Below are positions 46,631-53,014 of a stretch of DNA of 64,000 nucleotides, piece by piece. Location: sequence record NC_022096.1, one strand, 5' to 3'. Each line of letters starts with the position of its first letter. Positions within the stretch are counted from its first letter, which is position 1. The notes below the pieces were generated by a model, which did no database searches, was not told where the DNA came from, and saw nothing but the letters and a program-made list of their open reading frames with translations. The position numbers and the translations under genes were made by a program.

Positions 46631-47234
46631 TCGCAAAGCCTGTGCGGCTTCCAGACAGGACGCCTTCGTAGTAGTAGAGGAGTTCTCGGCAGAGGGATTG
46701 CAAGACACGTTCGACATAGTTGAGCCTGCTTGGGTCCATGTTCGTGAGAGTGCGGAGTTTTTCTGCGGTGTCCGGGTCCACACGGTACAGTGGACGTATG
46801 AGAGCCAACACCGTTTCGATGATCCCTGTGATCGGGTGAAACTTGAGCGTGTGATTCCCCTGGACATCGCCGTACACTGTCATATCTACCGTGTGATCGA
46901 CAGTGAATCCGCAGACTTCCGTCAACGAATACACAGCGTCCATGTATTCACGGAACAAGGCCATGTCCCGAGTAAGCAGCTCAAATTCGAGCTTCGGGAG
47001 ATTGGATTTTTGAGTGTACGCAGGTGTTGCAGAGTGCCCTGAGTAAAATAGGTCCGGACTTGGAAACTGAATGTTCACGCTGAACGAACCGCCCAAGCGG
47101 CTACAACGCAGAAACAACGTGAACCACTCCACCATGAGCAACGCAGCCGGCTTGTTGTCCTCGTCGGCCTTGGTTTCAGCCAACTCCTTCAGGACATCTG
47201 CTAGCGCCCTTTCGCCTTGCCCGATTGCTTGCAT
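46551..47234 (-). CDS. Hypothetical protein
   Basis: 227-aa ORF; 3' end overlaps the next gene. Confidence 0.5.
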   Translation of the reverse strand: MQAIGQGERALADVLKELAETKADEDNKPAALLMVEWFTLFLRCSRLGGSFSVNIQFPSPDLFYSGHSATPAYTQKSNLPKLEFELLTRDMALFREYMDAVYSLTEVCGFTVDHTVDMTVYGDVQGNHTLKFHPITGIIETVLALIRPLYRVDPDTAEKLRTLTNMDPSRLNYVERVLQSLCRELLYYYEGVLSGSRTGFANAGSGWGRRDQERLQAPLPRISSDRF

Positions 47235-47593
47235 TTCATCAGCCTCTTGACCTGTTTGATTACGGAGTCCCCATGGCAGCGCTCATTCGCGTCGCAGAAG
47301 CATACAAGCCGAACGTCATGTCCAGCTTGCAACCACTCCACGATTTTGTTGAGCCTCTCCATGATCGCCTTGTCTTTGTGCTTTACACTAAGCTCCAAGG
47401 CGGTGTCATACAGGTCGCACACTTCGTCGCGGTTGCCGTCTCGACCGAGCACGTAATCGTTACCCAAAGGCGACGGCCTGCCGATGAACTCATCAATCGT
47501 CGGAGCTTTTCGTGGGTCCAAAATAACGACAGGACGGCGGCTGTGATTGATCCGACTCAAGACGCCAAGGGTGTTGGTTTTGCCGAAAAGCAT
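47201..47593 (-). CDS. DUF4326-family protein
   Basis: FIGRPSPLGNDY...L.CFC....CHGD signature; GGAG SD. Confidence 0.85.
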   Translation of the reverse strand: MLFGKTNTLGVLSRINHSRRPVVILDPRKAPTIDEFIGRPSPLGNDYVLGRDGNRDEVCDLYDTALELSVKHKDKAIMERLNKIVEWLQAGHDVRLVCFCDANERCHGDSVIKQVKRLMKCKQSGKAKGR

Positions 47594-48708: not shown

Positions 48709-49512
48709 TCACTTCCTGTTCCGCTTGCGACTCTTGGCTTGCTGTTTCCGCTTCGCCTTGTTCTTGGCGCGCTGCTTCTCACCAGGCCCTTTCAACGGAG
48801 GGTGGCCGGCGTAGTCCCAACCGTTAGACGTATCGACCACTACACGGCCGTCATCCATCTTAGGCAGAAAACCCAGGCTATCGACGTGTATGACGTACGG
48901 CGTCATGCCACGAGCTTTTCCATGGTCGATGTGGCCCACGGTGCCGACATTTGGATGATTTGCCTGTCGAGCAGTGCGCTCTTCCTCGCCCAGTATGTGA
49001 GTCAGGGCGTTTAGGTAGGGCATGGCATTGCGAACTTTTGCCTCGGCATCCGCTACGCTGCGGTCTTTCGAGGAGTCCCACTCGGTCCATCCGTCACGCG
49101 GCTCTCGGGCAAACATCATAAACTCGTGCCAGTCAAGCTCCACATGCCAGTCTTCGGCAATGTGTGGAAGCAATGCGATGAACGCATACTGGGTGTTGAT
49201 GTCCTTGAAACAAGCGTAGAAATCCAACCCACGCCCTTCGAGTACGGTGCGCGGTGCGGCCTCATCCTCTTCACCGTACGGTGAATTGCGAAAGCCTGGA
49301 ATAGCCGATGACATTGCACTGGGCACCCAGTCGCCGTAGCTGCTCAGGCAGAGAAAGCGAAAGGCTTCCGTTTCGGTAATTGCCTCGGGCAAGTCCAAGC
49401 TTTCCCACGGCGCGAAGTCGTTGTCCTCGTTTGGTGTGAAGCGTGGCGCCAGCGCAGTCAGCAGCTCCTCTTTCAAGGTAACGTGACCGCGAATGTGTGC
49501 GTAATCACCCAT
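48709..49512 (-). CDS. Hypothetical protein carrying an EF-Tu-like peptide and a basic C-terminal tail
   Basis: NVGTVGHIDHGKARGMT at 48901-48951; C-terminal KQRAKNKAKRKQQAKSRKRNRK. Confidence 0.65.
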   Translation of the reverse strand: MGDYAHIRGHVTLKEELLTALAPRFTPNEDNDFAPWESLDLPEAITETEAFRFLCLSSYGDWVPSAMSSAIPGFRNSPYGEEDEAAPRTVLEGRGLDFYACFKDINTQYAFIALLPHIAEDWHVELDWHEFMMFAREPRDGWTEWDSSKDRSVADAEAKVRNAMPYLNALTHILGEEERTARQANHPNVGTVGHIDHGKARGMTPYVIHVDSLGFLPKMDDGRVVVDTSNGWDYAGHPPLKGPGEKQRAKNKAKRKQQAKSRKRNRK

Positions 49513-52597: not shown

Positions 52598-53014
52598 TTA
52601 CTCCGGGCGTGTCGGGACAGACACTTCGAGAATGTGGGGTCGAATCGGACCTCCACTTTCCATTGGGTAGATGTCCTGCCGAGACTCGAAGCAAATCTCA
52701 GCACACAGCTTACCGTTGCGAACAAGCATACGCCGAAGAATGCCGATACCAAGCTCTTCGTGGAAGACTGCTTCGCCTTCTTCCGGACACCAAGACACCG
52801 TACGCTTCTTGACCTCCTGAGTGTCTACGCCTACGACTCGGCCTTCATCTTCCTCGATGGAACGTGCCAGACGTGCGATGATTTCGGAGTTCATGCTGCG
52901 ATGGTGCGTACGGGCAACGTCCGCGATGCGTTCGCGCATGCCATCCGGCAAACGCACGACAAACTTGTCGGCGCTGCGGCTGTTATACGGCATACGGGAT
53001 TTCTCGTTATTCAT
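52598..53014 (-). CDS. amrZ: AmrZ/AlgZ-like Arc-family ribbon-helix-helix regulator with a non-AmrZ C-terminal domain
   Basis: [40 protein letters not shown] versus P. aeruginosa Amr[41 protein letters not shown] (recalled from memory; 34/40 identical if the recall is right). Confidence 0.92.

Follow-up and report, generated by a model that had tools for sequence, protein, structure and literature searches.

The elongation factor EF-Tu, which accounts for 6-10% of the proteome (PMC13581612), is a hub of the conflict between phages and bacteria through the defence proteins Lit, Avs7 and the protease of type IV Thoeris. Lit cleaves it between G59 and I60. The caspase-like Thoeris protease, which was cloned from E. 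coli and a Pseudomonas strain, cleaves it after R45 and R59 (R59 in EEKAR/G) and is promiscuous for Arg (10.1101/2024.10.24.620036). Avs7 takes EF-Tu into its complex via domains II-III (PMC13581612). Host-derived fragments and mimicry motifs are already known in viral accessory proteins; our literature searches on an EF-Tu-like phage module, or on the imitation of EF-Tu, found no description of either.

The 64,000-nt stretch of DNA analyzed here (the window, to which all coordinates refer) was 100% identical to KF147891, the sequence of Pseudomonas phage PaBG, a Baikalvirus and 258-kb jumbo phage. Its gene PaBG_00294 (gp294; 48709..49512, minus strand) encodes 267 aa plus a stop from an ATG start and is annotated as a 'hypothetical protein' (AGS82166.1). 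An initial annotation of this DNA had pointed to a short peptide within this ORF that resembles EF-Tu, and the comparisons described below point to a portable, tuf-like peptide that selection has maintained.

Locus and domain organization of gp294

The gp294 gene lies within a close-packed leftward run of small genes of unknown function, where it shares 8 nt at its start with the upstream gene and is separated by 4 nt from the downstream one. A Pfam search of ten neighbors yielded a sole match, a DUF4326 protein of 130 aa (PF14216, E 2.8e-12; window 47201-47593, minus strand), and the remaining neighbors provided no functional clue for gp294. The DUF4326 gene is conserved, following gp294 at a distance of a few genes in L002-L005, the PaBG-like contigs examined. 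Additionally, an Arc-like repressor gene (52598-53014, minus strand), labeled 'alginate and motility regulator' in PaBG, is conserved and precedes the gp294-family gene by ~3-4 kb in all related contigs examined (L002, L005, L009 and L010). Promoter and terminator scans of the window remained at background level, and the tRNA scan of the window returned 0 tRNAs. A role for gp294 as a virion component was rejected, as the protein is absent from the 14 abundant PaBG virion proteins reported (PMC7412058). It was likewise rejected as a defence-system protein, with 0 matches in PADLOC, a blank that is expected of an anti-defence candidate.

The protein could be divided into an N-terminal alpha/beta domain that begins with MGDY (residues 1-150; 49063..49512, minus strand; HMM search and AF2), a long helical linker predicted by AF2 (residues 153-184; 48961..49056, minus strand), an insert of ~55 residues holding the EF-Tu-like motif, and a basic C-terminal helix (residues 245-267; 48712..48780, minus strand; AF2 pLDDT 84-97). 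The AF2 model, which was run with a 31-sequence alignment, reached a pLDDT of 81.5, with values >90 across residues 1-150 and <50 across residues 189-232 within the insert; as four sequences cover the module in that alignment, the low pLDDT may reflect the shallow alignment and not necessarily disorder. A run with only 5 sequences gave a pLDDT of 53 and was left out of the structural reading. A combined MAFFT alignment was not used for folding either; it had set sequences from Machinavirus-type phages, described below, at the N-terminus and not on the gp294 module.

Amongst 5.8 billion clustered proteins, four homologues of gp294 were found (99, 82, 64 and 62% identity), all of them from syntenic PaBG-like phage contigs. 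A profile search of 1.8e9 representatives yielded 27 further, remote relatives at E-values from 1e-20 to 1e-4, which align from residue 1 (MGDY) and have only the ~150 N-terminal residues in common, the C-terminal parts being variable; two of these have phage gene neighborhoods similar to that of gp294. The isolated phages in the collection searched, other than PaBG, held no detectable gp294 homologue, and for this reason the comparative depth is small. As far as seen, the N-domain family appears confined to PaBG-related phage contigs, and gp294 displays its features, namely the ~150-residue MGDY domain and a frequent basic C-terminal tail. The remote homologues (P0005-P0031; total length 144-501 aa) join one N-terminal domain to very different C-terminal parts, with basic tails of several distinct styles, and single members match PHROGs for a terminase large subunit and for an excisionase/regulator. 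Assignment of a function to the N-domain from its fold was abandoned, since Foldseek against the PDB gave nothing below E 0.5 and only a vague ferredoxin-like/ABM/NIPSNAP likeness. A profile search of the PDB with the N-domain found no relative, and its BFVD matches were uncharacterized jumbo-phage proteins only (e.g., from BcepSauron and phiRSL1).

The very basic tail described in the initial annotation is indeed present, with 13 Lys/Arg in the last 23 residues, and is near-invariant in the clade. The suggestion that it forms part of a mimic did not hold, as the tail also occurs in remote homologues that are without the EF-Tu peptide, many of which end in a tail of the gp294 style. By these comparisons, the tail is an older feature of the N-domain family.

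The EF-Tu-like peptide and its ARGMT extension

Translation of window positions 48901-48960 on the minus strand gave NHPNVGTVGHIDHGKARGMT, residues 185-204 of the 267-aa ORF, and thus reproduced the peptide reported by the initial annotation. Within it, HPNVGTVGHIDHGK (residues 186-199; 48916..48957, minus strand) was identified by translation, Pfam and conservation as an EF-Tu-like strand beta1 and P-loop peptide. Residues 177-201 of gp294 align gap-free to EF-Tu residues 3-27, the linker end EEERTAR being aligned to EF-Tu residues 3-9 (HMMER), and 11 of the 14 positions in HVNVGTIGHVDHGK are identical to bacterial EF-Tu (TIGR00485; PF00009). For gp294 as a single sequence the statistics are borderline, with 13.4 bits and E 0.058 to Pfam GTP_EFTU (PF00009; cut-off 26.5 bits), E 0.0024-0.09 to PDB EF-Tu chains, and E 5e-4 to NCBIfam EF-Tu models (19 bits against a cut-off of 449). 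These Pfam, NCBIfam and PDB matches are confined to residues 177-201, or ~25 of the ~394 residues of EF-Tu, in agreement with the initial description of an otherwise unrelated protein.

The borderline E-values of the single sequence leave room for the explanation that the segment is a relic, that is, a captured or convergent Gly/His-rich strand-loop with a structural role only (e.g., a metal-binding H..H.DH turn), or that the likeness in gp294 is largely due to chance. The downstream VIHVDSLG, which is also found in P0012 and P0007, resembles VGHIDHG, and part of the pattern could therefore be an internal duplication. We consider a relic unlikely, for reasons that include the recurrence of the peptide elsewhere (next section). 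The free divergence of the motif that the initial annotation had named as grounds for refutation was not seen: across the four known homologues (62-99% identity), HPNVGTVGHID does not change at any residue and its codons vary synonymously, which indicates that selection acts on the peptide.

The peptide is directly followed by ARGMT (residues 200-204; 48901..48915, minus strand), which can be read either as a switch-I-like KARG[I/M]T or as a diverged start of helix alpha1. The former reading is that of the initial annotation, which saw the P-loop spliced to switch I. The corresponding sequences are ...EEKARGITINT... in EF-Tu and HGKARGMT in gp294, and ARGMT comes directly after the Lys, while the G2 threonine of EF-Tu (RGITI) lies about 35 residues after G1. 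With 5-mers of those six-frame ORFs of the window that reach at least 150 aa as the null set, the match of ARGMT had a P of 0.008 to any EF-Tu 5-mer and of 0.0006 to EF-Tu 5-mers after K/R. The resemblance is thus unusual in PaBG itself (P 0.0006-0.008). In the relatives the segment reads ARGQT and ARGMS in two and S-DLS in a fourth lineage (P0004), with ARG kept in three of four lineages, and no ARGMT-like site was found in the three other carrier families. Furthermore, profile alignments place ARGMT opposite the residues after the GK of EF-Tu, where helix alpha1 starts, with a one-residue insertion, and P0012, a remote homologue without the EF-Tu peptide, likewise has RG....hhHhDS[LV]GF. Due to the variation, the absence elsewhere and the collinear placement, the switch-I splice, which is weakly supported by these comparisons, would be a possible embellishment of the PaBG clade and not a defining feature of the module.

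The remainder of the insert (residues 205-239; 48796..48900, minus strand; pLDDT <50) reads YVIHVDSLGFLPK...DGRVVVDT..GWDY.G.PP and contains a DxxG-like HVDSLG 10 residues after the motif. The pattern hhHhDS[LV]GF of this segment is common to the remote N-domain homologues P0012 and P0007, and the Gly of HVDSLG is Ser in P0001 and P0004. As a candidate G3, HVDSLG gave no significant collinear match to EF-Tu. A 'skeletonised G domain' with long deletions (G1-G2-G3-beta4, the last three represented by ARGMT, HVDSLG and MDDGRVVV) was rejected after long-gap local alignment to EF-Tu with 2000 shuffles (P 0.05-0.17).

These observations bear on the role of a decoy for EF-Tu-targeting defence effectors that the initial annotation had put forward. 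A stoichiometric decoy of EF-Tu would be implausible because EF-Tu makes up 6-10% of the proteome (PMC13581612), an abundance that rules out simple competition, and a tight pseudo-substrate or inhibitor is a candidate alternative. Such a pseudo-substrate would join G1 to the switch-I cleavage site (HGK-ARGMT), possibly together with the G3-like HVDSLG, and would copy the nucleotide-pocket face of EF-Tu, inhibiting Lit-like or type IV Thoeris caspase-like proteases. The likeness of KARGMT to the KARGIT of EF-Tu, with the P values given above, and the retention of ARG in most lineages are consistent with this model, as is the fact that both known EF-Tu-cutting defence proteases, one of them from a Pseudomonas strain, act within KAR/G/I. 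The long-gap alignment also chains ARGM, HVD..G and MD.G..VV in EF-Tu order, although the chain is not significant by shuffling. The S-DLS of P0004, the lack of the site in the other carrier families and the profile placement of ARGMT after GK argue against the model, and an EF-Tu-like context would not be needed for a Thoeris protease that is promiscuous for Arg. Altogether, we regard a pseudo-substrate of this kind as very unlikely.

Recurrence of the module and the GTPase question

A tblastn search with the motif region retrieved ~110-aa proteins of Erwinia and Salmonella Machinavirus-type jumbo phages, which correspond to phrog_12626 (true members reach E 5e-61 over profile positions 1-108) and some of which are labeled 'putative elongation factor Tu' or 'putative GTPase'. 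Matches in the 'phages' collection to AFYI01000003.1, AGRM01000003.1 and others are host and not phage, these being Salmonella chromosomal contigs with an ordinary tuf. In the 16-sequence alignment of phrog_12626, 10 of the 19 invariant columns fall inside P.H.NVGTIG.V.H, and the family profile matched the N-termini of PDB EF-Tu chains collinearly over EF-Tu residues 6-39(52) (E 4e-8 to 1e-5).

The relation of gp294 to this family was supported by BLASTP (E 1e-7) and by hhalign of the gp294 clade against the family (97.3%, E 2.4e-11, 39 columns). gp294 holds the EF-Tu-like module of phrog_12626, P.H.NVGT.G.[IV][DE]H ... LGxLPK, and the parts after the loop aligned better than shuffles (P about 0.01), with LGxLPK and W..G..P in common. 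Against the full 109-position profile, gp294 scored only E 0.012, with residues 182-219 matching profile positions 31-65 only, and it does not appear to be a full-length member of the family.

In the Erwinia phages Huxley (L006:2356-4892) and pEa_SNUABM_8 (L007:2364-4229), the gene for the 110-aa protein immediately follows a GNAT gene, labeled ribosomal-protein-alanine acetyltransferase in Huxley, and a macrodomain (Appr-1-p processing) gene is found a few genes beyond it in both. These neighbors suggest a modification of host proteins.

The search was extended to IMG/VR, which was scanned with the module alignment and a degenerate DNA pattern, the loci being sorted by ORF length and by likeness to Salmonella EF-Tu. 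Amongst the 48 loci with the motif, about 24 (within L018-L064) hold full-length tuf-like ORFs of 387-560 aa that are 52-89% identical to Salmonella EF-Tu, on contigs of up to 618 kb (several of 370-620 kb); some of the high-identity cases on viral contigs may be host DNA. The captured fragment may have come from such full-length ORFs. Short ORFs resembling truncated or frame-disrupted tuf-like copies were also observed (L024, L047, L049, L055 and L061).

When the motif was masked, the non-GTPase carriers fell into four solid clusters and two singletons. The clusters are gp294, phrog_12626, a 94-aa family and a 195-209-aa family, here called MKSIKH, which begins MKSIKHVNVGTVGH[IV]DHGR. Three sequences of the MKSIKH family hardly differ over their first 23 residues, as opposed to 42% identity overall; their loci (L013/L014/L015:2998-~3600) lie on viral contigs of 214-229 kb, and the start codon of the gene overlaps the end of an upstream gene of ~500 aa. 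Beyond its opening, this family had no Pfam match and no homologue in isolated phages. The module sits at residue 6, 12, 35 or 186 depending on the family and so behaves as a portable module, and the best NCBIfam models were those of EF-Tu in all four carriers examined (gp294, 5e-4; Huxley gp203, 6e-7; L013, 3e-3; L021, 1.3e-5).

Judged from these alignments, the module is common to at least four unrelated phage protein families, mostly of jumbo phages. Of the two things that the initial annotation had suggested looking for amongst phages, the motif free of other GTPase elements recurs in other families, and ARG[IM]T does not co-occur with it there. The conservation in the clade, the second family and the wider recurrence together make a solid case that the EF-Tu likeness of the gp294 peptide is beyond chance. 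This information also bears on the relic explanation. The truncated tuf-like ORFs on viral contigs indicate that fragments do arise, which is in its favor; near-identical 12-14-mers in four unrelated families, in each of which they are the most conserved part, and the preference of all carriers tested for EF-Tu-specific models speak against it.

By sequence criteria, gp294 is not a GTPase. That it could be a true GTPase, or hold a complete G domain in degenerate form, was rejected, as G4 and domains II/III are missing and the scores are far below the Pfam and NCBIfam cut-offs. NKxD occurs nowhere in the 267 aa, and neither G4 nor domains II/III were found in any carrier family. The initial statement that no other GTPase motifs are present accordingly holds for G4 and for domains II/III and is inexact with respect to the DxxG-like HVDSLG, whose likeness to G3 is statistically unsupported. 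The Walker A pattern GxxxxGK[ST] is also unmet in gp294, where GHIDHGK is followed by Ala in place of the Ser/Thr of EF-Tu, and the loop of P0002 reads GHIDVQR, with G and K lost. Across the carriers, GK is replaced by xR, GR, GI, GF, GD or VQR; the second loop glycine varies (S/G/Q/N/A, with Q in P0002); and most of the PaBG clade retains the Walker lysine, which gives way to R in P0002, in phrog_12626 and in the MKSIKH family and to I, F or D elsewhere. Only non-GTPase carriers had a Pro at the second position of the motif. The best-conserved residues of the module are the H, N, T, D/E and H peculiar to EF-Tu and not the generic phosphate-binding ones, and the gp294 peptide is specifically EF-Tu-like and not a generic P-loop. 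Since the carriers are without the remaining G domain and the Walker lysine is replaced in nearly all of those outside the PaBG type, binding or hydrolysis of GTP in the manner of EF-Tu would not be expected.

A more limited function in binding phosphate was also considered. Isolated beta/P-loop/alpha units are able to bind phosphate ligands, as known from protein-engineering work, and the module could be a minimal element of this type, in which a degenerate beta-strand/P-loop/helix unit cradles a nucleotide, a signaling nucleotide or a nucleic acid, assisted in gp294 by the basic tail. In phrog_12626 and the 94-aa family, strand, loop and helix run collinear with those of EF-Tu, a basic residue (K/R) occupies the Walker-lysine position in phrog_12626, the MKSIKH family and the PaBG clade, Ser/Thr usually comes next in phrog_12626, and a conserved basic helix lies near the module in gp294. 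These features are offset by the variable second loop glycine and by the I, F or D at the lysine position in other carriers, by the Ala in place of the Walker Ser/Thr and the unrecognizable helix in the PaBG clade, and by conservation that peaks at EF-Tu-peculiar rather than phosphate-binding residues. Phosphate binding would therefore be doubtful as the role of the module.

Possible role and comparison with known systems

We tentatively favor, at somewhat less than even confidence, the reading that the gp294 module is an EF-Tu-derived portable element for recognition or mimicry, with a mode of action that we infer. According to this proposal, gp294 would serve the PaBG phage lineage as an accessory protein, in which a tuf-like piece was inserted between the lineage-specific N-terminal domain and the basic C-terminal helix. 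The piece would span approximately residues 4-26 of EF-Tu, from the last part of the N-terminal arm through strand beta1 to the P-loop, would be displayed on a flexible segment and would be kept as a recognition element that mimics that part of EF-Tu, or unfolded or nascent EF-Tu, thereby engaging a host or defence factor that normally sees EF-Tu. The non-GTPase context, the purifying selection and the recurrence fit a mimic better than an enzyme. Descent of the module from a bacterial-type tuf is probable over its ~20 residues, convergence being the alternative. Strand beta1 lies buried at the center of folded EF-Tu, where the edge of the P-loop alone is exposed, and for this reason the native surface cannot be reproduced by a linear copy.

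A more specific version of the mimicry proposal concerns anti-defence. Phages, and jumbo phages especially, may carry a portable mimic of the EF-Tu strand and P-loop that misleads or neutralizes immune proteins that cut, sense or co-opt EF-Tu; in PaBG the mimic would be extended by the switch-I-like KARGMT, with Lit-like proteases, type IV Thoeris proteases or EF-Tu-dependent sensors as the targets. We hold this version to be quite unlikely; if true, anti-defence by mimicry of a translation factor would be a new class.

More generally, the conservation of a non-catalytic copy of the EF-Tu strand and loop in at least four families suggests that phages exploit EF-Tu by imitation. Whatever the partner may be, the module provides a short, well-defined handle on several jumbo-phage families of unknown function. 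Additionally, the labels 'putative elongation factor Tu' and 'putative GTPase' appear overstated for the Machinavirus proteins, for which GTPase activity would be impossible.

In comparison with the known systems, the Lit and type IV Thoeris proteases both cut EF-Tu in KARGIT, the gp294 counterpart of which is KARG[M]T, a likeness by sequence alone; this target site is not conserved across the gp294 clade and is missing from the other carrier families. Lit is triggered by the T4 Gol peptide, to which the gp294 peptide is unrelated. The full-length tuf-like genes borne by phages have the same N-terminal peptide as gp294 but encode complete GTPases, whereas only the first strand and the loop are kept in gp294. 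The closest counterpart is phrog_12626, in which, as in gp294, the EF-Tu-like peptide is followed by LGxLPK and W..G..P, and both are accessory proteins of jumbo phages with unknown functions. The two differ in that the flanks are unrelated, in that phrog_12626 has neither the N-domain nor the basic tail and carries xR in place of GK, and in that the part resembling helix alpha1 is clearer in phrog_12626 than in gp294.
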